The notes beneath the pieces were generated by a model. It was not told where the DNA came from. It did no database searches and saw only the letters and a program-made list of their open reading frames with translations. A program made the translations under genes and the position numbers. A stretch of 64,000 bases of DNA from Obrimoposthia wandeli (lineage: Eukaryota), in the NCBI GenBank assembly GCA_977020255.1, contig CDROCS010001295.1, positions 62,001 to 126,000 on the forward strand, given 5' to 3'. Positions 11,513 to 53,001 of this stretch are shown here, piece by piece (position 1 is the stretch's first letter; each line of letters begins with the position of its first letter).

Positions 11513-11530
11513 ACTATTCCCCTAAAAGCG

Positions 11531-12271: not shown

Positions 12272-12310
12272 CTGAATACCTTAGCTGTTTTATCGTTATC
12301 TCTATTAGAT

Positions 12311-12326
12311 AGCAATATGCATGCCA
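12311..12326 (-). promoter_or_regulatory. sigma54 (-24/-12) promoter of flgF
   Basis: Minus strand TGGCATGCATATTGCT (GG-N10-GC), 40 nt upstream of the ATG. Confidence 0.8.
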
Positions 12327-12360
12327 TAAACTTAGAACACTTTTTAGATTTTAATAGGCA

Positions 12361-12398
12361 AAAAAAATCCTTAGCTAATATTTTTAAGCTAAGGATTT
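12361..12398 (-). terminator. Rho-independent terminator after flgE
   Basis: AAATCCTTAGCT...AGCTAAGGATTT stem followed by a long U-run on the minus strand. Confidence 0.8.
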
Positions 12399-12416
12399 GT
12401 TATACCGATGTAGTGA

Positions 12417-14564: not shown

Positions 14565-14575
14565 GTTATATTCTC

Positions 14576-15259: not shown

Positions 15260-15269
15260 AAATCACCTA

Positions 15270-32968: not shown

Positions 32969-32969
32969 C

Positions 32970-33278
32970 TTAAGCCTCCTTTGCCGCAGCTTCACTGGCT
33001 GCAGTAATTGTTGGTTTTTCGCCGATTTTATACACTTCTTTTATCTCGTACGTTTGCGTATCACGGGTGATATTAAAAAATTTGCGACAGCCGACTGCAT
33101 GTACCCAAAGTTCATGATGGATACCACGTGGATTAGTGCGAAAAAACATATATTCGCCCCACTCTTTATCGCTACAGCTTTCAGGGTCTAGAGGGCGCGG
33201 AATATGCGCCTCGCCAGCTGCATGAAACTCTTCCTCTTCACGGTGTTCTTCACAGTGCGGGCAGTAAATATAAAACAT
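32970..33278 (-). CDS. soxD: Sarcosine oxidase subunit delta
   Basis: IYCPHC...EF...GEAHIPRP...WVHAVGCRKFFNITRDT (Zn site). Confidence 0.96.
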   Translation of the reverse strand: MFYIYCPHCEEHREEEEFHAAGEAHIPRPLDPESCSDKEWGEYMFFRTNPRGIHHELWVHAVGCRKFFNITRDTQTYEIKEVYKIGEKPTITAASEAAAKEA

Positions 33279-33300
33279 AGATAACTCCTATAGCAGTAGC

Positions 33301-34554
33301 TTAATGGGCAACGCCTGCTGCACCGTGTTCATCGATTAACGCACCGTCATGGAAACGGAACATTGAGAAAGGCTTCGCCATATCAGTCGCTTCACCTGCT
33401 GCTAAAGTGCCGGCAAATACATGCCCAGAACCAGGCGTTGCTTTAAAGCCGCCAGTACCCCAACCACAGTTGAAGAATAAGTTTTCAACCGGTGTTGCAG
33501 AGATAATCGGACAAGCATCGGGACAGGTATCAACAATACCACCCCACTGTCGGTTCATGCGTACACGACTGAATACCGGAAAGAGCTCAACTATCGCCTG
33601 CACGGTGTGCTCGATAGTATGATAACTGCCACGCTGACCATAACCATTGTAACCATCGATACCGGCACCGATCACTAAATCGCCTTTATCAGATTGTGAA
33701 ACATAACCATGTACATGATTAGACATCACAACCGTATCTAAAATAGGCTTAATCGGCTCAGAAACTAGCGCTTGTAGCGGGTGTGACTCAAGTGGCAATC
33801 TGAAACCTGCCATCGCCGCCATCACACTAGAGTTACCTGCCGTAACACAACCAATACGATTAGCATTGATAACACCGTGAGTTTTGGTCATCACACCCGT
33901 TGCTGCACCATCTTCTTGGATGATATCAACCACTTCACATTGCTGAATAAGATCAACGCCCAAGGCATCTGCTGCACGTGCATAACCCCAAGCTACCGCA
34001 TCGTGACGTGCAACGCCGCCTCTTGGCTGCCAAGAAGCACCCATAATTGGATAGCGTGGATTATCAGAGCAGTCCATCATCGGTACTATTTCTTTGATTG
34101 ATTGTGCATCTAAAACTTCACCGTCAACACCATTTAAACGATTGGCATTAACACGGCGCTGTATATCGCGCATATCTTGTAGCGTATGCCCTAGGTTTAG
34201 TACACCGCGTTGACTGAACATCACGTTGTAGTTAAGGTCTTGTGAAAGGCCTTCCCACAATTTCATGGCGTGTTCATATAACTTAGCTGATTCATCCCAT
34301 AAATAATTAGAGCGCACGATGGTAGTATTTCTTGCTGTGTTGCCACCGCCTAAATAGCCTTTCTCTAAAACGGCAACATTGGTAATACCGTGCACTTTAG
34401 CTAAATAGTAAGCCGTGGCGAGCCCGTGGCCACCGCCACCGACGATGATCACATCATATTTTTTCTTTGGTACTGGGTTACGCCATACACGCTGCCAGTT
34501 TTCATGATGACTCAAGGCGTGCTTTAACAGCCCGAAACCTGAATATTTTTGCAT
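33301..34554 (-). CDS. soxB: Sarcosine oxidase subunit beta
   Basis: [14 protein letters not shown]; [16 protein letters not shown]; [14 protein letters not shown]; [10 protein letters not shown]. Confidence 0.98.
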
Positions 34555-34721
34555 GGATAAACCCCTGAATTAGCCTTGTTTATTTGTATAAAAAACAAGC
34601 TTTATATTACATAAAAAAACCCCTACAAGAAAGTTAGTCTTGCCGTGTATTACAGGTAGGGGCTGCAAAATTTTGATAGCGTCGATAGTAAATTTATTAC
34701 TTGCCAACTTTCTACTTACAT

Positions 34722-34748
34722 CCGACAAAAGACTATCTAGTTGCGACA
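34722..34748 (-). promoter_or_regulatory. Tandem TGTCG repeats (21-bp period) upstream of soxB; putative AraC/GbdR-type site
   Basis: Minus strand TGTCGC-N15-TGTCGG; the same architecture recurs upstream of gbcB and gbcA. Confidence 0.5.
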
Positions 34749-34840
34749 GCTATGATTAAGGCGTTCTTTTATAACGCACAATTAACTCATCCATTTAGCA
34801 AGCTTGCTGCAGCAGTATCTTTAAATAGTCGAACTGTCAC

Positions 34841-35965
34841 TTAAAAATCTATTTGTAAATCTGTTTTAGGTACACTACAACATGAGAGAATATAACCGGC
34901 AGCGATATCTTCATCTGTGATTCCACCATTGTGATTCATCTCAGCCTCACCCTCAACTTTCAGCACTTTGCAAGTGCCACATATTCCCATGCCGCAAGCC
35001 TTTGGTATCATTAAACCCAGTTTGGATGCCGCAGAGTGTATTGTTTCACCAGGGTGAATTTGAATACTTTTTCCTTTACTGATAAAGCCAATATTGAGCA
35101 TATCAGCACTATCTAACGCATCAGCTTCATCAACGGCTATTTCCGCTTGATCTAGTGCGGTTTGTTCGACTTCAACCGGAGTCGCACCAAAAGATTCTTC
35201 ATGGTAGTGCGCCATGTCAAAGCCGTTATTTTCTAATAAGTTTCTGACCGCTTTCATATACACTTCGGGGCCACAGCAATAAATTTCACGCTGCATAAAG
35301 TCGCTACAAATCATCGCTAACTTATTACTATCTAAATAACCCCGATAACCATGCCAAGCTTGGCCAGTTTCTTGACGTTCGCAAATCAAACTTAACGAGA
35401 AATTGCTAATGCGTGAACACATATGCTCAAGCTCACGATGATAAATAATATCCGCAGGCGTTCGTGCACTATGTACAAAGTGCATATCTACTTCGGCATT
35501 GGTATCAAAAAACCAACGCGCCATCGACATAACCGGCGTAATACCCACACCACCTGACAGGAGCAGCACTTTTGTTGAAGGGTGATCGATACAATTAAAT
35601 AAACCAACAGGTCCGTGTACCGCAAGCTCAATACCTTCTTGTAAGTTATCGTGCAACCAATTTGAAACTAAGCCACCCGGCACTCGCTTGATAGTAATCG
35701 AAAAACTATAAGGCACCGAAGGTGAGCTAGAGATAGTATAAGAGCGCATAATTTGCTCTCCCTCTATTTCCAATTCCAAAGTAACAAACTGCCCAGGTTT
35801 AAAGAAGAACATTACTGGCTGTTCAGCCATGAAACAGAAAGTTTTAACATCTGCTGTTTCCTCTATTACTTTTACACAACGTACTGAGTGTCTACCGTTA
35901 CTCCATACTTTGGTATTTATTTCATGGAAGTAATCATCGCTCTGGGAAACTACTGCTGTATTCAT
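34841..35965 (-). CDS. gbcB: Glycine betaine demethylase reductase subunit (FAD/NAD + C-terminal 2Fe-2S)
   Basis: FKPGQF; RSYTISS; SGGVGITP; YCCGP; ACGMGICGTC...LSCC; divergent from gbcA. Confidence 0.88.
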   Translation of the reverse strand: MNTAVVSQSDDYFHEINTKVWSNGRHSVRCVKVIEETADVKTFCFMAEQPVMFFFKPGQFVTLELEIEGEQIMRSYTISSSPSVPYSFSITIKRVPGGLVSNWLHDNLQEGIELAVHGPVGLFNCIDHPSTKVLLLSGGVGITPVMSMARWFFDTNAEVDMHFVHSARTPADIIYHRELEHMCSRISNFSLSLICERQETGQAWHGYRGYLDSNKLAMICSDFMQREIYCCGPEVYMKAVRNLLENNGFDMAHYHEESFGATPVEVEQTALDQAEIAVDEADALDSADMLNIGFISKGKSIQIHPGETIHSAASKLGLMIPKACGMGICGTCKVLKVEGEAEMNHNGGITDEDIAAGYILSCCSVPKTDLQIDF

Positions 35966-36085
35966 GAGGTGCACACTCTTGGTCTATTTTATATTGAATT
36001 GTCTGGTTCGCTTGTTAACAAATAACTAACGCATAATAATTTCGCACATCATCTGCTGTGTCACACTTTTGATATTACCCAATTA

Positions 36086-36195
36086 CGACACGCATGTGCT
36101 TGCGTGTGACACTGAGCCTAGAGTAGTTATCTTTTGTCGTCCTAAGCGATTTTTCACTCTTTTAAAACGTCGCATCAAGCATCTGTTTAGGTCGC
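36086..36195. promoter_or_regulatory. GTCG direct-repeat sites in the gbcB/gbcA divergent promoter region
   Basis: Minus strand TGTCA-N16-TGTCG (36111-36086, 21-bp period); plus strand GTCGC at 36169 and 36191 (22-bp period) and TGTCGT at 36135. Confidence 0.45.
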
Positions 36196-36277
36196 TATCA
36201 GGCCGTTTTAAAAGAGGTTTTTAAGCGAATATCAGCGACCTCAAAAGCGCACAAAAATTTAGATTTAGGATACCAAT

Positions 36278-37558
36278 GTGAACTCACACGATTTAATTAA
36301 CATTAAGCATGTAGATTTTCCTCAAGCACGTAGCGAAATGTATCGCCTGCTCGCCGCTCGAAAAGGAAATTTGTCTTTGCCACAGCCTCTGTATAATGAT
36401 CCTCATATGTTTAAAGTTGATATGCAGGAAATATTTCAAAAAGAGTGGATATTTGTGGGTATGAGCTGTGAGCTACCTGATAAAGGTGACTACATCACTG
36501 TCGACATTGGCCAAAACTCGATCTTAATTGTGCGCGATGCTGATGCTAACGTCAGTGCTTTTCACAACGTATGCCGCCATCGCGGCTCTAAAATTTGCGA
36601 CCAACAAAAAGGCAAGGTCGCTAACTTAGTTTGTCCTTACCATCAATGGACCTATGACTTAAAAGGCAATCTATTATTTGCTGGTACTGAAATGGGTAGC
36701 GCGTTCGATCTCAAACAGCACGGTTTAAAGCCTACTCATTGCCAAGTCGCGGGGGGCTTTATCTTTGTCTGTTTAGCACTGGGTAATGCACCAGATATTG
36801 CACCACTAGCCGCCACCTTAGATGAATATATGGCGCCTTATGATATTGAAAACACTAAGGTTGCCGCACAAACAACCATTGAAGAAAGCGCTAACTGGAA
36901 ACTGGTGTTAGAAAACAATCGCGAGTGTTATCACTGTAACGCTTCTCACCCAGAGTTATTAGATAGCTTATTAGAATGGGATGATACGAGTGATCCTAGG
37001 GCTTCTGCTGAGTTTATTGCGCATTGCGAGCAATCAGCCAAGGCATGGGATGCTGAGGATATACCTCACCAGCATGTATCTTACGGTTTAAAAAATCGTA
37101 TCGTGCGCATGCCACTTAAAGAAGGCACCAGCACTATGACTATAGATGGGGGCAGAGCTTGCGATAAACTGATGGGGCGCATTAAAAACCCACAATTAGG
37201 TTCCATGAGAATCTTACATCTACCCAATTCATGGAACCACATGCAATCTGATCACTGCGTGGTTTTTCAAGTCATTCCCATAAGCGCTCAAAAAACCTTA
37301 GTGACCACTAAATGGCTAGTACACAAGGATGCACAAGAAGGTGTTGATTATAATATCGAGCGCCTAACACAAGTATGGAACGCCACTAATGAGCAAGATA
37401 AAATACTAGCCGAGCGCAATCAGCAAGGAATTAATTCCATTGGCTACCAACCTGGGCCCTACTCTGAAACATTTGAGTTTGGTGTAATTAACTTTATTGA
37501 TTGGTACAGTGAAACCATCCGCAATAATATTGATATAGCGAGTGCGACCCACCAATAA
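36278..37558 (+). CDS. gbcA: Glycine betaine demethylase oxygenase subunit (Rieske)
   Basis: NVCRHRGS...CPYHQW Rieske ligands; ENNRECYHC..SHPEL mononuclear Fe site; betaine/sarcosine gene context. Confidence 0.9.
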   Translation: MNSHDLINIKHVDFPQARSEMYRLLAARKGNLSLPQPLYNDPHMFKVDMQEIFQKEWIFVGMSCELPDKGDYITVDIGQNSILIVRDADANVSAFHNVCRHRGSKICDQQKGKVANLVCPYHQWTYDLKGNLLFAGTEMGSAFDLKQHGLKPTHCQVAGGFIFVCLALGNAPDIAPLAATLDEYMAPYDIENTKVAAQTTIEESANWKLVLENNRECYHCNASHPELLDSLLEWDDTSDPRASAEFIAHCEQSAKAWDAEDIPHQHVSYGLKNRIVRMPLKEGTSTMTIDGGRACDKLMGRIKNPQLGSMRILHLPNSWNHMQSDHCVVFQVIPISAQKTLVTTKWLVHKDAQEGVDYNIERLTQVWNATNEQDKILAERNQQGINSIGYQPGPYSETFEFGVINFIDWYSETIRNNIDIASATHQ

Positions 37559-37832: not shown

Positions 37833-40718
37833 TTGATCTTTTTGGCAATCCTTGTTGGGCCGTTAATGACTTTACAAACGCAAGCTAAATCCTTACTAAA
37901 ATACCAATCGCTGGGCATTATAGGGATTGTACTATTTATTATTGTAGGAGTTTTTAGTTACTTTTTATTTAAAGATTCTGCTAGTAATAAAGATCGTTTG
38001 GAAACTTTAAACAAAGAGGTACTTATCGAGCAGAAACAGCGAATTCGTGCTGAACTAAAAAATGCTCGCGATTACATATTTTATAAAAACTCTCAAGCTG
38101 AAGTACTCTTAAAACAACAAACCAAGCTTGCTGTTGAGCGTGCTATTAGCGTTGCGGATGGTATCTATCAACAGCAAAAATCAATTGCCAGCGATGCCCA
38201 AATAGAGCTGTTGATTGTTGCTGCTCTGCGCAATTTGCGGTTTTTTAACGGCCGCGGCTATTTTTTCATTGACCAACTCGATTCAAAAGTAGTTTTGCAA
38301 CCTCCTTCCCCCCATTTGGAAGGCACATACTGGTTTAGCCACCCTGCCACAGTGCAAGCGATGAACTTAATTCTTAATTCAATAAATAATCCGCAAAGGG
38401 CCGGCTATTCAAGTTATTTATGGCATTCGCCTTCAGATACAAATAAAAATAACATGATTAAGAAAATAACTTATTCTAAAGTTTTTGAACCTTTAGATTG
38501 GGTGATAGGTACCGGTGATTACCTCGCTAGCTTCGAAGAAGATTTGCGTAGCGCTGCACTTGATCGACTGTCTTCGATAAACTCCAAAGGCCAAGTAAAA
38601 ATCACTATTTTAGACAACAAAGGCAATATACTAAGCCAGTCACAAACTGATTCAACTACTAATGAATCTACTACCCTTGAGCTAAACCAAACGTTGCGAG
38701 AAAGTATTGTAGCGTTCGCCCACAGCAGTGATGCCGGCTTTGTTAATTTTTCACAACTTAATCAATCAGAGCAAAATATTAGTAACCATTTTTCCTATAT
38801 TGAAACGATTACACCTTTCTCATGGGTGTTGGTAGCTGACATAGCCCCCAGTAAAATAAATGGCATAATAAACGAGCATAAAAAGCAAATGTCAGCGCAG
38901 TTTAGCAAAGATATAACGATGCTAATTATTGTATTGGTCATCACCTCTTTACTAACGCTGGTTATCATCTATATTTACAATTTTTGGTTTAAACGCCTCT
39001 TTAAACACTACCAAATCAATTTAGATTTACAGCAGCAAGAGATCAACGCCAGTGCCAAAGCGCTAAAACTTGCTTCAAGAGTCTTTGAATCCTCAAATGA
39101 CGCAATTATCGTATCGGACGCACAAAATAATATAGTTGCCGCCAACCCGGCCAGTGTCAGACTTACGGGCTACAACACCACAGAGATATTCGGTAAATGC
39201 ACCACTATTTTTGGCTCTGATCATCAAGATGAAAGATTTTATCAACAAGCACTACACAAGCTTGAAAAGGTCGGTTACTGGCAAGGTGAAATTTGGCATA
39301 AACACAAGAATGGTAAACTATATCCAGTGTGGCTTACCATTTCCACCAGCCTTGACACCCAGCACAATATACTCAATTATATTTCTATCTTTTCAGATAT
39401 TTCTGAACGGAAAAAAACCGAAAAGCGCTTATCATACTTAGCTGATTTCGACCCTTTAACAAAACTGTCTAAACGTCACATCCTTGCAAAGCGCACCGAA
39501 GAGTTAATAAAAGCCCACCAGCCTGCCAATCCGCAAAAATTTGCTTTAATGCTTATCGATTTAGATCGTTTCAAAAACATTAATGATTCCCTAGGGCATA
39601 ACATAGGTGATCAAGTGTTACAAAAAATAGCTGAACGCTTATCAGCAAATATCCGAGCGTCGGATACCATCAGCAGACTCAATGGTGATGAATTTATTAT
39701 TTTAGTCAATCATAGTAAAGCCGAATCGGCTGCCGCTAGGCTTGCCTATAGAGTGCTAAGAGACTTAGTTGTGCCCCTAGAGATAGAAACACATAGCTTA
39801 GTAGTAACTCCCAGCATTGGTATTGCCACCTTTCCAGAGAATGGAGATAGTTTTGATATTTTGCTTAAAAACTCTGACGCAGCGCTTAACCACGTTAAAA
39901 ACCAAGGGCGCAACCATTTCCAATTTTTTACCCATGACATGCACCAACGCGCCTCAGAAATGCTCACCATCGAACAGGGTTTACGACTCGCTATAGATAA
40001 AAACCAATTTGAACTTCATTACCAAGCACAGTTTGATTTAATCAGCGGTGATATTATTGGTTGTGAAGCGTTATTGCGTTGGAACTGCCCTGAACTAGGC
40101 TCGCCTGGACCTGATACATTCATTCCAGTGGCTGAAGAAACTGGGCTAATACTACCTATAGGACAATGGGTATTAGATCAGGCTTGTGCCCAAGCAGCTA
40201 TCTGGCAAGACTTAGGCTTACAATTAGTGCCTATAGCCGTAAACGTCTCTAGCTTTCAATTTAATAAAAACATTGTTAAATCCATACAACATAGCTTGAA
40301 TAAAGCGAATCTTGATCCTCAATGGTTAGTCGTTGAAATTACCGAAAGCGCTTTAATGCAAGACCCAGAATTCACTAAAGATGCAATACTTGAATTACGC
40401 ACATTTGGCGTAAAAATCGCACTGGATGATTTCGGAACAGGATACTCTTCACTAGCCTATTTAAAGCGCTTCCCTATCGACAAGCTTAAAATCGATCGCG
40501 CCTTTATTACCGGCCTACCCCAAGATCAAGATGACTTAGTGATCACCCGATCTATCATCGATGTAGCCCGAAACCTAAACATGACCACAATCGCAGAAGG
40601 TGTTGAAACGTTAGATCAGCAACTACTTTTAAGAAGTTTAGGCTGTGATCAAATGCAAGGTTTTTATAAAGCCAAGCCTGTCGATGCCGAGCAATTCGCA
40701 ATATCGCACTTAAGTTAG
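37833..40718 (+). CDS. Membrane c-di-GMP phosphodiesterase: TM-Cache-TM-PAS-GGDEF(NGDEF)-EAL
   Basis: Cache motifs RFFNGRGYFFI and VFEPLDWVIGTGDY; PAS domain; SRLNGDEF; EALLRW; DDFGTGYSSL; LKIDRAFI. Start may be ATG 37866. Confidence 0.93.
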   Translation: MIFLAILVGPLMTLQTQAKSLLKYQSLGIIGIVLFIIVGVFSYFLFKDSASNKDRLETLNKEVLIEQKQRIRAELKNARDYIFYKNSQAEVLLKQQTKLAVERAISVADGIYQQQKSIASDAQIELLIVAALRNLRFFNGRGYFFIDQLDSKVVLQPPSPHLEGTYWFSHPATVQAMNLILNSINNPQRAGYSSYLWHSPSDTNKNNMIKKITYSKVFEPLDWVIGTGDYLASFEEDLRSAALDRLSSINSKGQVKITILDNKGNILSQSQTDSTTNESTTLELNQTLRESIVAFAHSSDAGFVNFSQLNQSEQNISNHFSYIETITPFSWVLVADIAPSKINGIINEHKKQMSAQFSKDITMLIIVLVITSLLTLVIIYIYNFWFKRLFKHYQINLDLQQQEINASAKALKLASRVFESSNDAIIVSDAQNNIVAANPASVRLTGYNTTEIFGKCTTIFGSDHQDERFYQQALHKLEKVGYWQGEIWHKHKNGKLYPVWLTISTSLDTQHNILNYISIFSDISERKKTEKRLSYLADFDPLTKLSKRHILAKRTEELIKAHQPANPQKFALMLIDLDRFKNINDSLGHNIGDQVLQKIAERLSANIRASDTISRLNGDEFIILVNHSKAESAAARLAYRVLRDLVVPLEIETHSLVVTPSIGIATFPENGDSFDILLKNSDAALNHVKNQGRNHFQFFTHDMHQRASEMLTIEQGLRLAIDKNQFELHYQAQFDLISGDIIGCEALLRWNCPELGSPGPDTFIPVAEETGLILPIGQWVLDQACAQAAIWQDLGLQLVPIAVNVSSFQFNKNIVKSIQHSLNKANLDPQWLVVEITESALMQDPEFTKDAILELRTFGVKIALDDFGTGYSSLAYLKRFPIDKLKIDRAFITGLPQDQDDLVITRSIIDVARNLNMTTIAEGVETLDQQLLLRSLGCDQMQGFYKAKPVDAEQFAISHLS

Positions 40719-42235: not shown

Positions 42236-43111
42236 ATGACAAATAAAACAGCTGCCTTTATCGGTTTAGGTGTAATGGGCTATCCAATGGCTGGCCACCT
42301 ACAAAGCCAAGGTTTTGATACCAGCGTTTATAATAGAAGTACCGACAAAGCCATTAATTGGCAGCAGCAGCATGGTGGAAATTTCGCTAAATCTCCAAAA
42401 GAAGCAGCTGAGAGCGCGGATGTGGTTTTTGTGTGTGTAGGCAATGATCAAGATGTGCGCAGTGTTATCTATGGTGATGATGGCGTATTAGCAGGGTTAT
42501 CAGCAGGTAACATTTTAGTAGATCACACCACTACATCTGCCACCTTGGCCATTGAGCTACAGCAAGCATGTGAAAAAATTGGCGTTAGCTTTATCGACGC
42601 ACCGGTTTCAGGCGGCCAAGCTGGCGCTGAAAATGGCAAGCTAACGGTTATGTGTGGTGGTGAGCAACATGCTTTTGATAAAGCAATACCGTTAATGCAA
42701 AGCTACTCTCAACAAATCCAATTACTGGGTGAAAATGGCCAAGGCCAGCGCTGTAAAATGGTTAACCAAATATGCATCGCAGGTGTACTTCAAGGGTTAT
42801 CAGAGGCATTACAGTTGGCAAAAGCTGCCAACCTACCCATAGAACAAGTTGTTAATACTCTAAAACATGGCGCTGCAGGTTCTTGGCAGATGGAAAATAG
42901 ATTAGTCACTATGGGCCAAGATAAGTTCGACTTTGGTTTTGCTGTCGATTGGATGCGCAAAGATCTAAATATCTGCTTAGAGGAAGCTGCTAGTTATCAA
43001 CTTGAGCTGCCTTTAACAAAAGAGGTAGACACTCGCTATGCTAAGCTGCAGGCTCAAGGTATGGGCCGTATGGACACTTCTTCACTCGTTAAATCCTTTG
43101 GCGAAAGCTAA
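42236..43111 (+). CDS. 3-hydroxyisobutyrate dehydrogenase-family NAD(P)-dependent oxidoreductase
   Basis: FIGLGVMGYPMA; DAPVSGGQAGA; catalytic CKMVNQI; FAVDWMRKDL. Confidence 0.92.
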   Translation: MTNKTAAFIGLGVMGYPMAGHLQSQGFDTSVYNRSTDKAINWQQQHGGNFAKSPKEAAESADVVFVCVGNDQDVRSVIYGDDGVLAGLSAGNILVDHTTTSATLAIELQQACEKIGVSFIDAPVSGGQAGAENGKLTVMCGGEQHAFDKAIPLMQSYSQQIQLLGENGQGQRCKMVNQICIAGVLQGLSEALQLAKAANLPIEQVVNTLKHGAAGSWQMENRLVTMGQDKFDFGFAVDWMRKDLNICLEEAASYQLELPLTKEVDTRYAKLQAQGMGRMDTSSLVKSFGES

Positions 43112-43118
43112 GTAGTTT

Positions 43119-43154
43119 AAATAGCTCAAATTCATTAGTAAGTTTGAGCTATTT
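43119..43154. terminator. Hairpin between convergent genes (likely bidirectional terminator)
   Basis: AAATAGCTCAAAT...GTTTGAGCTATTT. Confidence 0.65.
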
Positions 43155-43269
43155 GGTGTTGCTTTTAATACGTTGTACATACCACTCAAATCAGCATTTC
43201 TAATTGCGGTTGAGTGGCTGTTTTCTTTGCTGTTTAATTAGCAGCTGAAAACAAATAAACCAAATTCAT

Positions 43270-44826
43270 TTATTTAACAGTTAATACCGAAGCTGTTAAA
43301 GATAAGCTTTGTGCCATCTCTGAAACATCATTAGCAATACTATTGGTTTCTCCAGCTTTCTCTTGAGTCCCTGCATTACTATCTCTAATTGATTCCATAT
43401 CACCACTGACTTGCTCTGCAACCGTTCTTTGCTCCTCAATGGCAACGGCTATTTGCTCGCTCATATCTGAAATCAAACTAATTGCAACCGTCGCTTCGTT
43501 GAGCATTTCATTGGTTTTGGACGCGACAGATATTGCATCTTGGCTTTGTTGTTGCCCTTCTTCCATCATGCCTACTGCATTGGTAGCTGATGCCTGCAAA
43601 TTATCTACTATTTGATTAATCTCTTTCGTCGCTTCACTACTGCGCATAGCTAAAAGCCTTACTTCATCAGCAACCACTGCAAACCCACGCCCTTGGTCAC
43701 CAGCTCTAGCGGCTTCTATTGCTGCATTCAGTGCTAAGAGGTTAGTTTGTTCAGCAATGCTATGGATGATATTCGTCGCGTTACTGATATCTAAGGTATT
43801 AGCGGCAAGCTCGTCGATAACCAGTTTTACCCGGCTTATTTGGTTGGTTAGTAATTCCATTTGTTGCGTTGTATTATTTACTTGAGCATTACTTTTTTCT
43901 GACAGCTCTTTGGCGCTTCTAGAAGCCTCGGCCGTTTTCAACGTCGAATCAGCTATCTCAGCAATGGTATTACTCATTTCACTAACGGCTGTCACTACGC
44001 TGTTAATGTAATCACTTTGATTGTTTGATTGAATTTGGTTCTCAGTTGCTAGCATAGATGATTGATTAGCTATCGTTTTTAAAGTAGATGAGTTATCTTG
44101 AAAATTCTCGATAGTGCTGCGGATCATAGTAAAGAAATCATCTAATGAACTAATAAATAACTTATCATCACTTGATTTCGCTTGAATGCTATTCAAATCA
44201 AAACTCAAGTCTTTTTCTGTCGCGCACGTTCTAACACTGGCCATTATATGACTAGCCATTAAAAACTGTGATTTCAAACGAATAGAGAAGAATATCAAAA
44301 TAGCAGATTCAAGAATTACAAAAGCTGCATGCACGAAAAAAGTAGGCCAATCACAACTTTGGCCATAGGGTGTATAAGGTATCCCTGCAAAGCTCGCATT
44401 ACTTAACTGTAATGGCACGCTCACTAAATGATGAATGGCAATCACAGCAGCGGCAATTACAATAACTTTCCAATCGCGCCAAATGATAAGAAATGCCAGT
44501 GCCGTAAATATATGAAAATGCATTTCTAAACGGCCCAATTGCTGCATGATAATGATCATAGACATAATCATAAAGCTGGCGCCAATAATCCCTCGACTGA
44601 TAAGCGTGCCTTTAGCAGTATAATAAGCAACTAAACTTGCTACAACTACCAACGTTGCCGGTACACCTCCTTGCATATGCGTGCCGTAACCACTGGGAAT
44701 TAAAAAATAAATAAAAGGTAAATGTAGCGCTAAAATAATAAGCATGAACTTATCAGACCAAACTGCATCTGCTTTCATTCTGCTGTTTAAAAAAAGCTGC
44801 ACTTGATCCGCAATATTTGCTCGCAT
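43270..44826 (-). CDS. Methyl-accepting chemotaxis protein with a multi-pass, His-rich integral membrane input domain
   Basis: Signalling hairpin IAEQTNLLALNAAIEAARAGDQGRGFAVVADEVR. The first ~185 aa are hydrophobic helices carrying ALH35L, E101-M-H103-F-H105, RDW, H132H133 and H166AAFVILE; no large periplasmic ligand-binding domain. Confidence 0.95.
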   Translation of the reverse strand: MRANIADQVQLFLNSRMKADAVWSDKFMLIILALHLPFIYFLIPSGYGTHMQGGVPATLVVVASLVAYYTAKGTLISRGIIGASFMIMSMIIIMQQLGRLEMHFHIFTALAFLIIWRDWKVIVIAAAVIAIHHLVSVPLQLSNASFAGIPYTPYGQSCDWPTFFVHAAFVILESAILIFFSIRLKSQFLMASHIMASVRTCATEKDLSFDLNSIQAKSSDDKLFISSLDDFFTMIRSTIENFQDNSSTLKTIANQSSMLATENQIQSNNQSDYINSVVTAVSEMSNTIAEIADSTLKTAEASRSAKELSEKSNAQVNNTTQQMELLTNQISRVKLVIDELAANTLDISNATNIIHSIAEQTNLLALNAAIEAARAGDQGRGFAVVADEVRLLAMRSSEATKEINQIVDNLQASATNAVGMMEEGQQQSQDAISVASKTNEMLNEATVAISLISDMSEQIAVAIEEQRTVAEQVSGDMESIRDSNAGTQEKAGETNSIANDVSEMAQSLSLTASVLTVK

Positions 44827-44837
44827 TAAAAAATTCC

Positions 44838-45452
44838 TTATAAGTTCGTCAGCAATTTGTAATCACTAGTAATGTGTTTGAGATTTTGCTGAGTGTAAAC
44901 AACTAAACCGTTTAACTTGGGGTGTAGTAGGTATATGTAATTACTGTGCGTAATTTCCTTTTTACCCGGTATGTTTGATACCGATTGATTAAGCTCGGTT
45001 ATCACTTTGTTAAAGACAGCGACATCACTAATTTGAAAACCAATAAAATTGTCACTAAACTGTTTTAGAAAACGTGCTAGTACTTGTGGTGAATCATTGA
45101 GTGGGTCTATTGTTAAAAGAGAAAAAGCAGCTTTATCATCTAAATTTTGTTGTAGTTTTTGATAAAACTGCATCGAGACTGGGCAGGTAAAAGAGCAAAC
45201 CGTAAAACCGGTAGTAATGTATAGCGGCTGGCCAGCGTAAGACTGCCAGGTTAACTCCTCACCTAGTTGGTTGAGCATAGGGTAGTTATTTAATTCTATT
45301 GATGATTGAAAGCCATGAAGTGCGGGCTTTCCTAGTAATTCATTGTAAAAAGCGGTTGCCGGAAAAGCAGTTAATAAAAAAGCGCCTATAATGCTTGAAC
45401 TTGCAATGACCACTAAAATTTTTACTCTAATACTCTTCACTGTCATGTTCAT
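44838..45452 (-). CDS. SCO1/SenC family copper chaperone
   Basis: N-terminal TM anchor; GFTVC86SFTC90P (CxxxC); TIDPLNDSPQVL; distal H169 (ITHS). Confidence 0.9.
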   Translation of the reverse strand: MNMTVKSIRVKILVVIASSSIIGAFLLTAFPATAFYNELLGKPALHGFQSSIELNNYPMLNQLGEELTWQSYAGQPLYITTGFTVCSFTCPVSMQFYQKLQQNLDDKAAFSLLTIDPLNDSPQVLARFLKQFSDNFIGFQISDVAVFNKVITELNQSVSNIPGKKEITHSNYIYLLHPKLNGLVVYTQQNLKHITSDYKLLTNL

Positions 45453-45895: not shown

Positions 45896-46525
45896 ATGCC
45901 TAAAGTTGGAATGCCAGCCATTAGAAAACCACAGCTTATTGACGCCACAATAAAGGCAATTGATGCCGTTGGCTTACAAAAAGCCAGTGTTGTCATGATT
46001 AGTGGTTATGCCGGCGTTTCCCCTGCCATTATCAATCATTATTTTGGCGGTAAAGAAGGCTTGTTAGAAGAGACCATGCGTAGCATTTTGCGTCAATTAT
46101 CCAAAACCGTGCAACAGCGCTTAGCACAGTGTGATAAAGATGACGTGATTGAGCGCATTATCGCCATTGTTGGCGGCAATTTCGATTCTCAACAAATAGA
46201 TAGCAAAGTGGTAAAAACTTGGCTGGCCTTTTGGTCACGTGCTATGCACCAACCACAGTTATTTCGCTTACAAAGAGCAAACGAGAAACGCTTGCTATCG
46301 CACTTATTACTCGAGCTAAAAAGAGTATTACCAGCGCCTAGAGCCAAACTTGTTGCGCTTTCGATTGCTGCACTCATTGATGGTATATGGCTGCGCGGTG
46401 CTTTCTCACCTAACGGTATAGATAAAGACCTCGCCCAGCGCATAATTATCGATTATATAGAAACACAATTACCGCCACAAACCCTTGAAATTCATCAACA
46501 GCGCCAACTACTGAAAAAGAACTGA
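45896..46525 (+). CDS. betI: Choline-responsive repressor BetI (TetR family)
   Basis: [18 protein letters not shown]; IINHYFGGK; [11 protein letters not shown]. Confidence 0.97.
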
Positions 46526-46528
46526 ATT

Positions 46529-47986
46529 ATGAAATCGACTCAATTATATATAGACGGACAATACTGCGATGCAACCTCAAACGAGACCTTCGCCACCTAC
46601 AACCCAGCAACGGGTGAGTTACTAGCAGAAATTCAAACGGCGTCTTTGAGTGATGTTGATAAAGCAGTAGCGGCGGCTAAACGCGGCTTTGCTGTTTGGT
46701 CTGCAATGTCTGGTACTGAACGCGGCCGTATTTTGCAAAAAGCGGTCGCTATTTTGCGTGAGCGCAACGATGAGCTAGCCATGCTGGAAGTGTTAGATAC
46801 TGGCAAGCCAATTCAAGAAGCGGATTGTGTTGATATTGAAACAGGCGCAGATGTTATTGAATATTACGCAGGCCTTGCCACTACTATAAGTGGCCAGCAG
46901 CAAGATTTAGGCGGCTCTAATTTTTATTACTCACGCCGTGAGCCATTAGGTGTTTGTGCAGGTATAGGCGCTTGGAACTACCCTATTCAAATCGCCATGT
47001 GGAAATCAGGCCCAGCACTTGCCGCGGGTAACGCAATGATCTTCAAGCCATCTGAAGAGACACCCTTAAGCGTACTTAAGCTCGCTGAAATTTATACACA
47101 AGCAGGCTTGCCTAATGGCGTATTTAATGTGGTACAAGGCGATGGAAAAGTTGGCCAAGCGCTTTCTCGCCATCCTGAAATTGCCAAAGTCTCTTTTACG
47201 GGTGAATGTGGTACCGGTAAAAAAGTAGTGGCTGATGCTGCTAGCTCTTTAAAAGAAGTCACTATGGAGCTAGGCGGTAAGTCTGCTTTAATCGCTTTTG
47301 AAGATGCTGATATTGAAAACGCTGTTTCTGGCGCTTTACTGGCTAACTTTTATACTCAAGGTGAAGTATGCACTAACGGTACTCGCGTATTTGTACACGC
47401 GAGTATTTATGATCAGTTTATTGAAAAAATCAAAGCGCGCACCGAAAAAATGATCATTGGCGATCCGACTCATGCTGATACGCAAGTGGGTGCGCTAATC
47501 TCTAAAGATCATATGCAAAAAGTACTTGGCTATATAGAAGCGGCTAAAGCGGCAGGCGCTACGCTTGTTTGCGGCGGCCAGCAAGTGACTGAAAATGGTT
47601 TAGATCGCGGTAACTTTGTACAACCTACCGTATTTGCCGATTGCACTGATGATATGCCTAACGTTCAAGATGAAATTTTTGGGCCTGTTATGTCTATCCT
47701 GAAATTCGAAACAGAAGAAGAAGTGATCGCACGTGCTAACAATACTGATTTTGGTTTAGCTGCGGGCATTTTCACCACTAACTTCTCACGTGCTCATCGC
47801 GTTATCGCCAAGATGCAAGCCGGTATTTGCTGGATCAACACTTGGGGCGCTTCTCCTGCACAAATGCCAGTGGGTGGTTATAAGCAATCGGGGATTGGCC
47901 GTGAAAACGGGATTGATACCCTTAATCAGTACACACAAGTTAAAAGTGTCTTTATCGAACTTGGGGATGTCGAATGTCCGTATTAA
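46529..47986 (+). CDS. betB: Betaine aldehyde dehydrogenase
   Basis: [10 protein letters not shown]; MELGGKS; [13 protein letters not shown]; EIFGPV. Confidence 0.97.
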
Positions 47987-49689
47987 ACACCACCCTACTA
48001 GAAACAGCTAAGCACTACGATTACGTCATCGTCGGTGCGGGATCAGCTGGCTGCGTACTCGCCGATAGGCTCAGCGCTAATGGTACTAACACCGTTCTGT
48101 TGATAGAAGCCGGTGGCACCGATAAAAGCATTTTTATCCAAATGCCTACCGCGTTATCTTATCCAATGAACAGCGCGCGCTATGCTTGGCAGTATGAATC
48201 ACAAGTAGAGCCGGGCTTAGATGGTCGCCAACTGCACTGCCCTCGTGGCAAAGTACTTGGTGGCAGCTCATCTATCAACGGTATGGTATATGTACGTGGT
48301 CACGCTAAAGATTTTGATCAATGGCAAGAAAACGGCGCAGCTGGCTGGAGCTATCAAGATTGTCTTCCGTATTTTAAAAAGGCAGAAACTTGGATTCAAG
48401 GCGGCGATCAATATCGCGGCAATGAGGGCCCTGTTGCTACCTGTAATGGTAACAACATGAAAACTAGCCCGCTGTATCAAGCGTTTATTGATGCGGGTGT
48501 GCAAGCGGGTTACCCTAAAACTGACGATTACAACGGTTATCAGCAAGAGGGCTTTGGCCCAATGCATATGACGGTTAATAAAGGTGTGCGTGCATCCACC
48601 AGCAATGCATATTTACGCCGTACCATGAAGCGCGCTAACTTTACGTTAATCAGCTCTGTTGTATGTAACAAAGTATTGCTAAAAGATAAAACCGCTATTG
48701 GTATTGAGTACCAAAAAAGCGGTAAGGTTGAGCAAGTGATTGCCGACAAAGAAGTAATATTAAGCGCCGGATCAATCGGTTCACCTATGCTGTTGCAACT
48801 TTCAGGTATTGGTCCTGCTCAAGTTTTAAAAGAAGCGAATGTAGAGCTAGTTCAAGAGCTACCGGGTGTTGGCGAAAACTTACAAGATCATCTTGAAGTG
48901 TATTACCAATATGCCTGTAAAGAGCCTATTACCTTAAACGGTAAGCTCGATTTGATCAGCAAAGGCATAATCGGTACGCGCTGGTTACTGTTTAAAGATG
49001 GTTTGGGCGCCACTAACCACTTTGAGTCTTGCGGTTTTATTCGCTCAAGAGCGGGGCTTGAATGGCCAAACATCCAATACCACTTTTTACCTGCTGCAAT
49101 GCGCTACGATGGTGGCAAGGCAATTGATGGTCACGGATTTCAAGTACACGTAGGCCCTAATAAGCCAAGTAGTCGTGGGCGCATGTGGATTAAATCTAAT
49201 GATCCATTGGATAAGCCAAATATCTTATTCAATTACATTACGACTGAGCAAGATAAACAAGATTGGCGCGATTGTATTCGTTTGACTCGCGAAATTATGA
49301 GCCAAAACTCACTCGCGCCATTTAGAGGCGAAACCATTCAGCCCAATGAAGACATCCAAACCGATGAGCAAATAGATACTTGGGTAAAAGCGAATGTTGA
49401 AAGTGCCTACCACCCATCTTGTACCTGTAAAATAGGGGCTGATGATGATGCAATGGCAGTGCTTAATAATCAATGCCAAGTACGTGGTATTGAGCAATTA
49501 CGTGTGGTTGATTCATCTGTCTTCCCAACCATTACTAACGGTAATTTAAACGCGCCAACTATAATGGTGGCCGAAAAAGCCGCCGACATGATACTAGGTA
49601 ACACACCATTAGCTGCGTTAGATGCACCAGTGTGGATCGATAGTAACTGGCAGCAGCAGCAACGTTTAAATGTCAACAAGAGCGATTAA
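47974..49689 (+). CDS. betA: Choline dehydrogenase (GMC oxidoreductase)
   Basis: GAGSAG; [20 protein letters not shown]; ENLQDH; YHPSCTC; [11 protein letters not shown]. Confidence 0.97.
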
Positions 49690-49831
49690 GCAGTACAAAG
49701 AAAGATGGCGAGCTAGATAAATAGGAAGCAGATACCCAAACGATTTTATAAATTACTTACCCGCGCATTGTGATACGCAATGGCGCTGGGTCAAATTTAG
49801 AATTCTCACTAATAAAAAGAAGGAAATACTG

Positions 49832-50788
49832 ATGACTACACAGCAAAAAAAATCCACGAGTAAGAAATTATTATGCGTAGCGGCGCTATCACTGAGTGTA
49901 ATAAGTGGCAGTGCTTTTGCGGGCTCTTGCGATAAAGTACGTTTTTCTGATGTTGGCTGGACAGACATTACAGCCACGACGGCAATTACTTCTGAAATTG
50001 TCAACGCCCTTGGTTATAAGGCCTCTACGCAGCTATTATCAGTGCCGGTTACTTACACCTCCCTGGCTAATGCAGACATTGATGTTTTCTTGGGTAACTG
50101 GATGCCAACGATGGAAGCGGATATCGCAAAATACCGCGATGCAGGTACTGTTGAAACGGTACGTGCTAACTTAGAAGGTGCTAAATATACTTTAGCTGTT
50201 TCTAAAGCTGCTTTTGATGCGGGTGTTAAAACCTTTGCTGATCTTGCTAAGCATAAAAAAGAGTTCAAAGGAAAAATCTACGGTATCGAGCCTGGCAACG
50301 ACGGCAACCGTTTGATCCAAGATATGATCGACAAAAATGCCTTTGATCTTAAAAGTTTCAAGCTAGTTGAATCATCAGAAGCAGGTATGATTTCACAAGT
50401 AAGTCGTTCTGCTAAGCGTGATCAATGGGTTGCTTTTTTAGGTTGGGCTCCGCACCCAATGAACGCTAACATCGAAATGGAATACCTAGCCGGTGGCGAT
50501 GATTTCTTCGGCCCTAACTATGGTGGTGCCAGCGTTTTCACTAACGTACGTAAAGGTTACCTACAAGATTGCCCTAACATGGGTCAGTTAGTTCAGAATC
50601 TATCTTTCAGCTTAAAGATGGAAAACGAAGTAATGGGCGCTATTTTAGACGACGGCAAAAAACCTGAAGTGGCAGCAAAGCAGTGGTTGAAAGCTAATCC
50701 TGGTGTACTAGATGCATGGTTAAAAGACGTGACGACTAAAGATGGCGGTGATGCTTTAAAAGCAGTTAAAGCTAGTATCTCAATGTAA
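49832..50788 (+). CDS. choX: Choline ABC transporter substrate-binding protein
   Basis: Signal peptide; VRFSDVGWTDITATT; DVFLGNWMP; GIEPGNDGN; FLGWAPHPMN. Confidence 0.9.
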   Translation: MTTQQKKSTSKKLLCVAALSLSVISGSAFAGSCDKVRFSDVGWTDITATTAITSEIVNALGYKASTQLLSVPVTYTSLANADIDVFLGNWMPTMEADIAKYRDAGTVETVRANLEGAKYTLAVSKAAFDAGVKTFADLAKHKKEFKGKIYGIEPGNDGNRLIQDMIDKNAFDLKSFKLVESSEAGMISQVSRSAKRDQWVAFLGWAPHPMNANIEMEYLAGGDDFFGPNYGGASVFTNVRKGYLQDCPNMGQLVQNLSFSLKMENEVMGAILDDGKKPEVAAKQWLKANPGVLDAWLKDVTTKDGGDALKAVKASISM

Positions 50789-50833
50789 TTTAGATTGGGG
50801 ATGTTTATATAGCATCTCTTTTTTAAACTTCAA

Positions 50834-50884
50834 AGCGGCTAGCGAATAAGACGAAAACCTTCGTTATATTCGCTGGCCGTTTCG
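50834..50884 (+). other. Long intercistronic stem-loop between choX and choW
   Basis: AAGCGGCTAGCGAATA...TATTCGCTGGCCGTTT with an inner ACGAA/TTCGT arm; a second small hairpin with a U-tail lies just before it (about 50799-50824). Confidence 0.55.
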
Positions 50885-50944
50885 TTTAATTTTACCTTCG
50901 CTAAACATTTCTTAACACCTTACTTTCAAAATATAGGCTTTAGC

Positions 50945-51790
50945 ATGAACTGGATCACCGAACACAAAATTCCGATAGGCAGCTGGATGGAAAGCTTAGT
51001 TGATTGGCTTACCGATAACGCTGACTTCATCTTTGATGCTATCTCCGTCACATTAGAATGGCTGATCCTAACGGTAGTAGAGGCATTAATATACCTCCCT
51101 CCTTATGTGCCTATTCTAGCTGCAGGCGCAATCGCTTGGTTTTTACACCGCAGTGTTCCTTTAGTCATTTTTGTGGTGCTGGCACTGTTGCTGATTCTAA
51201 ACTTAGGTTATTGGCAAGAAATGCTTGAGACTTTTGTATTAGTTCTTACCGCCACCTCTATCTCTATTTTATTCGGTGTGCCTATTGGCATAACTGCAGC
51301 ACATAAGCCTTGGCTGTACACTATACTGCGCCCAATATTAGATTTAATGCAAACCATCCCCACTTTTGTCTATCTAATTCCAACCTTAGTCTTATTTGGC
51401 TTAGGTGTAGTACCTGGTCTTATTTCTACTATCATATTTGCCATTGCCGCCCCTATTCGCCTTACCTATTTAGGTATCAGCAAAGTACCCGGCGATTTAG
51501 TTGAAGCAGGTCGCGCCTTTGGGGCAACCCCATTTAAGCTACTTTATAAAGTAGAGCTACCAGCGGCAATGCCAAGCATTATGGCCGGTATTACCCAGTG
51601 CATTATGTTGTCACTTTCTATGGTTGTAATCTCCGCCTTAGTTGGCGCTGATGGCTTAGGCAAACCTGTAGTACGCGCTCTAAACACTGTTAATATCTCT
51701 CAAGGTTTTGAAGCAGGTTTAGCGATTGTATTAGTAGCAATTATTTTAGATAGAATTTGTAAGGCGCCCAACGCCAAAGAGGAAGGATAA
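50945..51790 (+). CDS. choW: Choline ABC transporter permease
   Basis: LRPILDLMQTIPTFVYLIP; EAGRAFGA..LL.KVELPAAMPSIMAG. Confidence 0.9.
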   Translation: MNWITEHKIPIGSWMESLVDWLTDNADFIFDAISVTLEWLILTVVEALIYLPPYVPILAAGAIAWFLHRSVPLVIFVVLALLLILNLGYWQEMLETFVLVLTATSISILFGVPIGITAAHKPWLYTILRPILDLMQTIPTFVYLIPTLVLFGLGVVPGLISTIIFAIAAPIRLTYLGISKVPGDLVEAGRAFGATPFKLLYKVELPAAMPSIMAGITQCIMLSLSMVVISALVGADGLGKPVVRALNTVNISQGFEAGLAIVLVAIILDRICKAPNAKEEG

Positions 51791-51792
51791 AC

Positions 51793-53001
51793 ATGGCCGC
51801 TATTAGTATACAAAACGTCGATGTTATCTTTGGTAAAAAGACTGAAGAATCCTTAGCACTACTCGACCAAGGTAAAACACGACAAGAAATTATAAACATT
51901 ACCGGTGACACGGTAGGTGTGCATAACGCTAGCATTGATATCGAAGAAGGCGAAATTTGTGTTTTGATGGGCCTCTCGGGTTCCGGGAAATCCAGCCTAT
52001 TAAGAGCGGTTAACGGTTTAAATAAAACCAGCCGCGGTAAGCTATTAGTACAAAATGGTACTGAGATGGTTGATGTCGCTAACTGTGATAGCGCTACATT
52101 GCTACATTTGCGCAGCCATCGTATCTCCATGGTGTTTCAAAACTTCGCTTTAATGCCTTGGTTGAACGTAATAGATAACGTCGCTTTCGGTTTGGAAATG
52201 CAAGGGATGAAAAAAGCGCAGCGTCATGAAAAAGCCATGGAACAATTAAAAATGGTCGGCTTAGATCAATGGGCTAAAAAGCTACCTAGCGAACTATCAG
52301 GTGGTATGCAGCAACGCGTTGGTTTAGCTCGTGCCTTCACCATGGATACCGACATTTTATTGATGGATGAGCCCTTCTCTGCACTTGATCCACTGATTCG
52401 TACTCAGCTACAAGATGAATTAATTGAGTTACAGCAAAACTTGAAAAAAACCATTGTTTTTGTAAGCCACGATTTAGATGAAGCGCTAAAAATAGGTAGC
52501 AAAATTGGCATTATGGAATCGGCTAAAATCATTCAATATGATATTCCAGAAAATATAGTACTTAAGCCTGCCAACGCTTATGTACAAGATTTTGTTGCTC
52601 ATACTAATCCGTTAAATGTGCTTAAAGGCCATTCACTTATGACCCTCGTCGCCGATTTAGCTAATAGCGAAGATGGCCTGTGCATTGATGAGATACAGCA
52701 TATTTATCTCTCAATTGACGCTCAACAACACCTGTTGAATGTATGCAAAAATGACAGTACATTAGAGATTCAATACTGTTCACCTGAGCAAGATATTAGT
52801 CAGTTATCAACCACCGGTATCACCTTGGTGCCTGCTGATATTAGTATGCGTCGTGCTATTGAAATTAAGTACCACACCAACTTACCGATCATTCTTGCCG
52901 AGCAAGAAAAAGTATTGGGCGTACTCAACGACAATAGTTTCTATCATGCATTGCTAGGCAAACACTTTCTAACTGATTTCCCAGACACACAAGTGTCATA
53001 A
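51793..53001 (+). CDS. choV: Choline ABC transporter ATP-binding protein
   Basis: GLSGSGKS; LSGGMQQRVGLARA; LLMDEPFSALDP. Confidence 0.9.
   Translation: MAAISIQNVDVIFGKKTEESLALLDQGKTRQEIINITGDTVGVHNASIDIEEGEICVLMGLSGSGKSSLLRAVNGLNKTSRGKLLVQNGTEMVDVANCDSATLLHLRSHRISMVFQNFALMPWLNVIDNVAFGLEMQGMKKAQRHEKAMEQLKMVGLDQWAKKLPSELSGGMQQRVGLARAFTMDTDILLMDEPFSALDPLIRTQLQDELIELQQNLKKTIVFVSHDLDEALKIGSKIGIMESAKIIQYDIPENIVLKPANAYVQDFVAHTNPLNVLKGHSLMTLVADLANSEDGLCIDEIQHIYLSIDAQQHLLNVCKNDSTLEIQYCSPEQDISQLSTTGITLVPADISMRRAIEIKYHTNLPIILAEQEKVLGVLNDNSFYHALLGKHFLTDFPDTQVS

Follow-up and report, generated by a model that had tools for sequence, protein, structure and literature searches.

Why should the gene of a copper chaperone of the SCO1/SenC family lie directly against that of a chemoreceptor? 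The question is raised by a stretch of 64,000 nucleotides (nt) from contig CDROCS010001295.1 (positions 62,001 to 126,000 of the forward strand) in the assembly deposited for Obrimoposthia wandeli (GCA_977020255.1), here called the window, within which positions are counted from its first letter. An SCO gene is followed there by the gene of a methyl-accepting chemotaxis protein (MCP), the receptor, whose N-terminal domain is rich in His and predicted to have six transmembrane (TM) helices (the 6-TM domain; coordinates in Table 1). SCO proteins have been seen as assembly factors of respiratory oxidases, and reviews point out that some bacteria have them but lack such oxidases, so that further functions may exist. 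An earlier note on this DNA proposed that the SCO protein metallates the receptor, a reading that is supported, as far as sequence analysis reaches, by the adjacency of SCO and by the conservation of the residues proposed as ligands. Since the pair recurs in about nine of ten loci, in distant bacteria and with several output types, the SCO protein and the 6-TM receptor probably form an undescribed metal-dependent sensor module, with copper as the most likely metal. What this analysis supports as new is a widespread two-gene sensory module; the kind to which it would belong, the membrane-embedded sensor with a metal cofactor, is known, and appears here with a dedicated SCO partner.

The SCO protein of the window matches Pfam family PF02630 (SCO1-SenC) with an E value of 7e-18 and 65.2 bits (cut-off 22.8), and it aligns over the CxxxC and His positions with SCOs of solved structure, namely Blr1131 (ScoI of Bradyrhizobium), human SCO1 and B. 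subtilis Sco. Translation and this alignment place intact copper ligands at C86, C90 and H169, where the earlier note had put them. Residues 1-11 are rich in Lys and Arg and are followed by a hydrophobic segment (about 11-33); the protein is predicted to consist of a single N-terminal membrane anchor and a thioredoxin-fold domain on the periplasmic side. The coordinates and minus strand of both genes agree with those noted before, and direct reading of that strand bears out an 11-nt gap between SCO and MCP, in which the TAA stop overlaps the ribosome-binding site (RBS) of the receptor gene, an AAGGA Shine-Dalgarno sequence positioned 8 nt ahead of the MCP ATG (ATAAGGAATTTTTTAATG). Translational coupling from SCO to MCP is plausible. 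Among public sequencing runs, the window sequence was found only in the assembly's own DNA runs.

The receptor was described as an MCP that lacks a periplasmic ligand-binding domain and takes its input from a bundle of TM helices, and the predicted structure agrees. In the AlphaFold2 (AF2) model the 6-TM domain comprises six TM helices and a small hairpin on the periplasmic side; the predicted periplasmic loops are only 9, 6 and 20 residues long. TM6 is modelled as one continuous helix (160-204) that runs into the cytoplasmic signalling hairpin. The cytoplasmic segments contain 4, 2, 2 and 3 Lys or Arg residues, and the periplasmic loops 0, 1 and 0. Such a positive-inside distribution argues for an N-in topology in which the periplasmic half of the membrane houses E101, H103 and H105, the pair H132/H133, C158 and H166, and it places the His cluster on the same side as the SCO domain. 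There is no Cys inside the TM helices of the domain, the sole conserved Cys being C158 of a periplasmic loop. Sequence searches of Pfam, NCBIfam and the PDB with the 6-TM domain, alone or as a set of 24 sequences, gave no match; Foldseek against the PDB returned nothing significant, and a shape search of the ESM Atlas gave TM-scores below 0.5. VIA-align retrieved only generic 6-TM anchors (adenylyl cyclases and ImcA) at a Z score of about 11, which is below the level of trust for helical bundles. Internal duplication of the domain was rejected, as hhalign of its two halves gave a probability of 0.3%.

Relatives were collected in two scans. The first, of one genome per species, yielded 444 loci with a relative carrying the EMHFHIF motif, of which the 80 closest were analysed; the second covered metagenomes, started from family members with outputs other than MCP and added another 80 loci. 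Partner SCOs were called by six-frame search with a hidden Markov model (HMM) built from the partner proteins, loci with at least 650 nt upstream being counted as evaluable (153 loci). In 141 of these (92%) the gene immediately upstream, on the same strand, is an SCO, and in 144 (94%) the locus contains one, the three further cases being slightly displaced, divergent or two genes downstream. The earlier note had named rarity of an SCO neighbour as a finding that would speak against its proposal; the homologous receptors do neighbour SCO, and chance adjacency is rejected by the 141 directly upstream genes. The spacing between SCO and receptor is most often a 4-nt ATGA overlap and mostly falls between -23 and +20 nt. 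SCO is the sole neighbour conserved across clades. Thirteen partner SCOs of diverse origin were checked against the Pfam SCO1-SenC cut-off and all exceed it, and the copper ligands are kept at a mean divergence of 76% (C86 in 139/140, C90 in 140/140 and H169 in 139/140 partners). Distances among SCOs and among sensor domains are correlated (r = 0.88, a value reached in none of 500 permutations), indicating long co-inheritance, to which shared phylogeny contributes. The sensor domain is the more conserved of the two, with a mean distance of 0.61 against 0.76 for the partner SCO.

The pairing is also visible in independent annotation: on a plasmid of Marinobacter nanhaiticus, RefSeq places a “SCO family protein” upstream of the MCP. 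On this plasmid, pD15-8W (L164:3381-6990), the SCO-MCP pair sits beside an IS3 transposase and ahead of a regulator of the Crp/Fnr family and a GGDEF-EAL gene, a setting which hints that the module may be mobile and may have a context related to oxygen or nitric oxide (NO). A decayed copy was also encountered (L167:2855-4182, and likewise L168 and L169), in which the receptor is split into a 266-amino acid (aa) piece and MCP fragments, and a C-terminal SCO remnant of about 49 codons lies directly upstream, as if the two genes had decayed together.

The earlier note had tied SCO to a chemoreceptor. The pairing with this receptor stands, and it is not specific to chemoreceptors, as the partner of SCO is the 6-TM domain whatever output that domain carries (MCP, kinase, GGDEF-EAL or SpoIIE). 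An exhaustive profile search recovered 5,063 representatives of the domain at 50% identity with E ≤1e-3, and 2,182 with E ≤1e-10. The new family that they form would be defined by an “EMHFH-HH-H” signature (E101-x-H103-F-H105, H133, Q140 and H166 in a six-TM bundle, plus a signalling output), all of which is found in the window protein. Outputs fused to the domain include MCP, HAMP-MCP, PAS-MCP, histidine and hybrid kinases, GGDEF-EAL and PAS-SpoIIE, and in AlphaFold DB clusters the same fold is N-terminal in many sensor proteins. SCO accompanies the histidine-kinase form too; in Sulfurimonas and other Campylobacterota the operon order is REC-PAS-HD-GYP response regulator, SCO, 6-TM hybrid kinase. 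The GGDEF-EAL form has an operon of binding protein, SCO and sensor, and with the SpoIIE-type form SCO is present and divergently transcribed. Shuffling among outputs in this way, with one accessory gene retained throughout, is the hallmark of an input module for sensing whose accessory factor serves maturation or co-sensing. The domain is spread across Gammaproteobacteria, Campylobacterota and other groups, and the ecology of its carriers, among them Sulfurimonas, Thiomicrospira, Marinobacter, Methylophaga and lucinid symbionts, fits the sensing of oxygen, NO or redox state. In the REC-PAS-HD-GYP operons, seen at L097:870-4835 and in about 28 similar Sulfurimonas/Campylobacterota metagenome loci, the SCO gene lies between the two signalling partners, which is reminiscent of prrB-prrC-prrA.

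If the receptor holds a metal, its ligands might be expected among the polar residues of the bundle. H35, H50, E101, M102, H103, H105, H132, H133, H166 and E173, which had been proposed in this role, are all present at the positions given for them. In an alignment of 262 homologues, E101, H103 and F104 are each invariant (262/262), followed by H133 (261), Q140 (259), H105 (258), D25 (252), M102 (245), E173 (242), H132 (241), H35 (234), M86 (231) and C158 (202); H166 is present in 259/259 sequences that have no gap there. The proposed ligands are thus conserved at 89-100% with the exception of H50, which is replaced by Tyr, Trp or Phe; C158, Q140 and M86 are conserved residues that had been left off the list. 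C158 is a Cys in 125/130 SCO-linked loci, and its commonest replacement among the homologues is His, an exchange that is typical of a metal ligand.

The arrangement of these residues was estimated by mean-field direct coupling analysis (DCA) of 575 non-identical sequences (effective number of sequences, Neff, 327). Its strongest couplings yield helix registers that agree with one another; in TM6 numbering they run H133 (~164), H132 (~165), H166 (166), H103 (~167), H105 (~169), H35 (~171-172), E173 (173) and M86 (~174). The six His therefore span a depth of about 8 residues, and the four universal ones about 3; H35 and H105 are coupled at rank 39 of 17,391 pairs. Such registers indicate, indirectly, that the residues are stacked in a layer some two helical turns thick within a compact bundle, near the periplasmic face. 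Spatial dispersal of the His residues, a further finding that would have spoken against the proposal, is thus not what the DCA-derived registers predict, since they put them at one depth.

A natural comparison is provided by an MCP subfamily of Pseudomonas and Stutzerimonas, reached through a tblastn match on a Pseudomonas plasmid, that has the same 6-TM domain. Among its 120 listed members, E101, H103, H133, H166 and M86 are kept in 120/120 and H132, Q140 and E173 in 119/120. Three positions are changed in every member: H35 is Met, Leu, Phe or a gap, H105 is Gly or Ser, and C158 is replaced (by Gly in 118). In seven distinct loci of the subfamily that were examined, no SCO gene is present (0/7). 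In four of them (4/7) the upstream gene encodes a DUF6436 protein, membrane-anchored and with SCPC and CFC motifs, which is possibly thioredoxin-like and may be a non-orthologous replacement partner. Given the joint loss of SCO and of H35, H105 and C158, the dependence on SCO maps to these three residues. The pattern points to one of two arrangements: a further copper site, loaded by SCO and lying below the four-His site that all members share, or a relay through which copper enters. In the first set of 153 loci the association of SCO loss with C158 loss is weak (2/8 versus 5/130) and comes from one clade, and it is not used as evidence in its own right. The Marinobacter loci L051 and L062 lack an adjacent SCO and have Ala or Val at C158; they are few and closely related, and are not treated as evidence. 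At a further locus, L074, C158 is Ala, and the HMM tally counted an SCO there, the upstream open reading frame (ORF) not being SCO-like on inspection.

The explanation that we favour, with a probability of roughly 0.55, is a copper-cofactored membrane sensor that is matured by its own SCO, senses a gas or redox signal and transmits it through TM6. SCO would be produced together with the receptor, face the periplasm with its Cys-x3-Cys/His copper site retained, and load or maintain copper in the His cluster buried in the periplasmic half of the 6-TM bundle. The universal layer of this cluster would be formed by H103, H132/H133 and H166, with E101 and Q140 nearby, and the SCO-associated set by H35, H105 and C158 of the loop, with E173 and M86 a turn further in. 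Sensing would be the task of the metal centre, the signal being either redox or small and diffusible, most plausibly oxygen, NO or another gas and less so copper or the redox state itself; a change at the centre would shift TM6 and with it the cytoplasmic MCP hairpin, thereby modulating CheA. That the metal is copper, that it passes from SCO to the receptor and what the stimulus is are points that we infer.

Several observations weigh against this explanation. Nine of the 153 loci have no SCO in the stretch examined and nonetheless keep the sensor residues. The correlation between SCO and the H35/H105/C158 triad comes from one clade, hence from one evolutionary event, and is not usable as statistics; the presence of a protein with Cys motifs, DUF6436, in place of SCO makes it possible that the role of the partner is redox rather than metal delivery. 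A ligand set of five to six His and two Glu in a helical bundle equally suits non-haem iron or haem. For the 6-TM domain, neither a solved structure nor a characterised homologue was found.

A literature search found neither the pairing nor the 6-TM domain described, most subscription journals lying outside its coverage. In the ETR1 ethylene receptors intramembrane Cu(I) is needed for gas sensing and is supplied by dedicated copper trafficking proteins. These receptors have three TM helices per monomer, with Cys65 and His69 in a single helix (TM2), and obtain copper by a cytosolic/lumenal route from a P-type ATPase and an ATX1-type chaperone, not from an SCO; the window domain, in contrast, has six TM helices and no TM Cys, and no homology to the ethylene-binding domain was detected. 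The closest functional analogue is the MHYT domain (PF03707), likewise a six-TM membrane sensor with conserved His and Met near the periplasmic face and many outputs, for which we know of no dedicated chaperone gene. MHYT is made of three repeated two-TM units with Met-His-Tyr-Thr, whereas the window domain is without repeat and has the motifs EMHFH, HH and H...E; membership in MHYT is rejected by the lack of an internal repeat and of any PF03707 match at E ≤10 in 24 members. The MHYT domain, of which CoxC of Afipia carboxidovorans is an example, requires copper to sense CO and O2 (PMC11347149). The assembly of CuA and CuB in haem-copper oxidases shares with the window pair a membrane-tethered periplasmic SCO with a Cys2His site and a target site in or at the membrane (PMC7558416), the difference being that the client here would be a signalling receptor and not an oxidase. 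The membrane-buried CuB of cbb3 oxidase is metallated from the periplasmic side by Sco-like chaperones, which are also found in bacteria without aa3 oxidase (PMC7558416). Metallation of CuB by Sco (PMC7558416) and the copper requirement of MHYT (PMC11347149) are therefore precedents for a copper-cofactored receptor.

An unlikely alternative, yet the one that survives best, is that SCO is itself a co-sensor, which binds periplasmic copper or switches its thiol redox state and relays this status to the receptor by contact or by reversible hand-over of copper, so that the signal would be copper availability or periplasmic redox. Strict pairing and conserved copper ligands in SCO fit this equally well, and loop residue C158 at the membrane surface could take copper transiently. 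A precedent exists in the RegB-SenC-RegA and PrrB-PrrC-PrrA systems of Rhodobacter, in which the SCO homologue is encoded beside a multi-TM sensor kinase and implicated in relaying an oxidase or redox signal; the SCO gene of regB-senC-regA and prrBCA adjoins that of a 6-TM sensor kinase, and a co-sensing SCO would resemble the proposed relay from PrrC to PrrB. SenC/PrrC is also the housekeeping oxidase chaperone, and there is no translational coupling between its gene and that of the kinase. The TM domain of RegB senses quinone through a GGxxNPF motif, and direct reading of MCP residues 1-200 found this RegB/PrrB-type motif to be absent. PrrC is a Sco-like chaperone for which thiol-disulfide oxidoreductase activity has been proposed, and SCOs bind both Cu(I) and Cu(II) (PMC7558416). 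Against a co-sensing role, the conserved or annotated neighbours in 163 loci included no genes for copper efflux or copper resistance (most of the neighbours specific to a clade being without annotation), and the outputs are motility and cyclic di-GMP (c-di-GMP) rather than metal homeostasis. The buried and near-invariant multi-His cluster looks more like a permanent cofactor site, and the SCO-less subfamily retains the core of that site, so that the domain can presumably sense without SCO.

More doubtful is a second alternative, in which the buried site binds iron or haem, in a hemerythrin-like or cytochrome-like manner, and SCO is only a thioredoxin-like oxidoreductase that keeps, for example, C158 or the site reduced. 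The ligand set of hemerythrin resembles the five or six His and two carboxylates in a helical bundle seen here. In bis-His haem b bundles the His residues are spaced by about 13-14 residues, unlike the HxH and HH of this domain, which counts against haem. The top Swiss-Prot match of the 6-TM domain in Foldseek is HtrVIII/Htr8 of Halobacterium salinarum (UniProt B0R5T0), a weak match with a TM-score of 0.62, 14% identity and an E value of 0.03. This transducer has the closest characterised receptor architecture, six TM helices being fused directly to an MCP domain without an extracellular ligand-binding domain in both proteins; it differs in being archaeal and, to our knowledge, has no SCO partner. 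It serves aerotaxis, and its TM region, reported to resemble the haem sites in subunit I of cytochrome oxidase, has been proposed to hold a metal cofactor and to bind haem (PMC13401364). The use of DUF6436, a different Cys-motif protein that is maybe thioredoxin-like, as partner in the Pseudomonas subfamily also fits, but the receptors linked to DUF6436 have no periplasmic Cys for it to act on. In the SCO partners the His ligand is retained in 139/140. We know of no role for this His in thiol-disulfide exchange, and its invariance argues against a purely thiol-based function of SCO.

We hold as equally doubtful an elaboration of the copper-cofactored explanation into a binuclear centre, in which H103, H132, H133 and H166 would hold a metal or haem and SCO-loaded copper would sit one turn below on H35 and H105, having entered via C158; the domain would then be a miniature, non-catalytic analogue of a haem-copper or type-3 copper site, acting as a gas receptor. 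CuB is an all-His site with an adjacent HH pair, and the pattern of single H, single H, HH and HxH presumably recalls the six His of haem-copper oxidase subunit I, a likeness that we take as a lead only. Membership of the 6-TM domain in COX1 is rejected (no Pfam match, and six TM helices versus a 12-TM core). Finally, that the 6-TM region is a mere membrane anchor and the SCO adjacency a matter of co-regulation or chance is highly improbable, for although the overall fold is like that of the anchors of adenylyl cyclases and of the diguanylate cyclase ImcA (at the Z score of about 11, below the trust level, given above), invariant polar and charged residues within the membrane are unexpected in an anchor, the pairing holds in 92% of loci, which span phyla and four types of output, and the sensor domain is better conserved than its SCO partner.

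In the window itself, no cytochrome oxidase (COX1/COX2) or other cuproenzyme family was found among the scanned ORFs of at least 90 aa, as the earlier note had also observed. The hairpin between the convergent dehydrogenase and MCP genes likely marks the end of a two-gene SCO-MCP operon as a shared bidirectional terminator; promoter scanning gave counts no higher than in shuffled sequence and was hence uninformative. The pair lies inside a catabolic island for choline and glycine betaine (29254-37558 and 45896-53001) with the sarcosine oxidase genes soxBDAG, a Rieske oxygenase and its reductase (GbcAB-like), betI-betB-betA and an OpuAC-type ABC transporter. Relatives do not share this gene order around the pair.

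Table 1. Features discussed in the text. Positions are those of the window, except for the SCO-less subfamily, where they are those of the respective locus. pLDDT, predicted local distance difference test; pTM, predicted template modelling score.
Feature	Position	Strand	Basis
SCO1/SenC-family gene, 204 aa	44838..45452	(-)	PF02630 match and orthologous partner in 141/153 related loci
CxxxC copper-ligand motif of SCO, C86-S-F-T-C90	45183..45197	(-)	Translation; C86 in 139/140, C90 in 140/140 partner SCOs
H169, third copper ligand of SCO	44946..44948	(-)	139/140 partner SCOs
Junction of SCO stop and MCP RBS	44827..44840	(-)	TAA stop at 44838-44840 overlaps AAGGA; 11-nt spacer to MCP ATG; reads ATAAGGAATTTTTTAATG
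MCP gene, 518 aa	43270..44826	(-)	PF00015, E 8e-39 at residues 300-481; AF2 pLDDT 87
MCP signalling domain including conserved hairpin tip	43384..43929	(-)	PF00015; tip residues invariant in receptor alignment
6-TM His-rich sensor domain, residues 1-190	44257..44826	(-)	AF2 pLDDT 91.6, pTM 0.86; outside all Pfam families
E101-M-H103-F-H105 motif, periplasmic start of TM4	44512..44526	(-)	Conservation in 262 homologues; translation
H132-H133 pair in TM5	44428..44433	(-)	Conservation in 262 homologues
H166-E173 stretch in TM6	44308..44331	(-)	Conservation; helix 160-204 in AF2 model
H35 in TM1	44722..44724	(-)	234/262 homologues; coupled with H105; lost in SCO-less subfamily
C158, periplasmic loop right before TM6	44353..44355	(-)	202/262 homologues; lost in SCO-less subfamily
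16-bp-stem hairpin between convergent dehydrogenase and MCP genes	43117..43156	unassigned	Terminator-like; consensus match only
Dehydrogenase gene, convergent with MCP gene	42236-43111		
dCache-PAS-GGDEF-EAL and PAS-PAS-GGDEF-EAL, two large c-di-GMP proteins	37833-40718 and 61332-63989	(+) and (-)	
Stand-alone cheW	27867-28406		
Flagellar flg genes	1455-16102		
SCO-less subfamily loci	L165:2994-4693, L172:3240-5551, L175:2311-4500, L176:1412-4500		

If the copper-cofactored explanation is true, a dedicated SCO paralogue with a signalling receptor as its client would extend metallochaperone biology to bacterial sensory proteins. It would also mean that chemotaxis, two-component signalling and c-di-GMP turnover are under the control of a large sensor domain that lies outside Pfam, NCBIfam and the PDB and forms some 5,000 clusters at 50% identity. 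For genetic work, the module offers the sco gene and a small set of invariant residues. As many of its carriers live at oxic-anoxic interfaces, the module is a testable candidate for direct in-membrane sensing of oxygen, NO or redox state; were the centre binuclear, it would represent an unrecognised class of O2/NO sensor, equipped with its own metallochaperone, in bacteria of redox gradients such as Sulfurimonas, Thiomicrospira, Marinobacter and Methylophaga.

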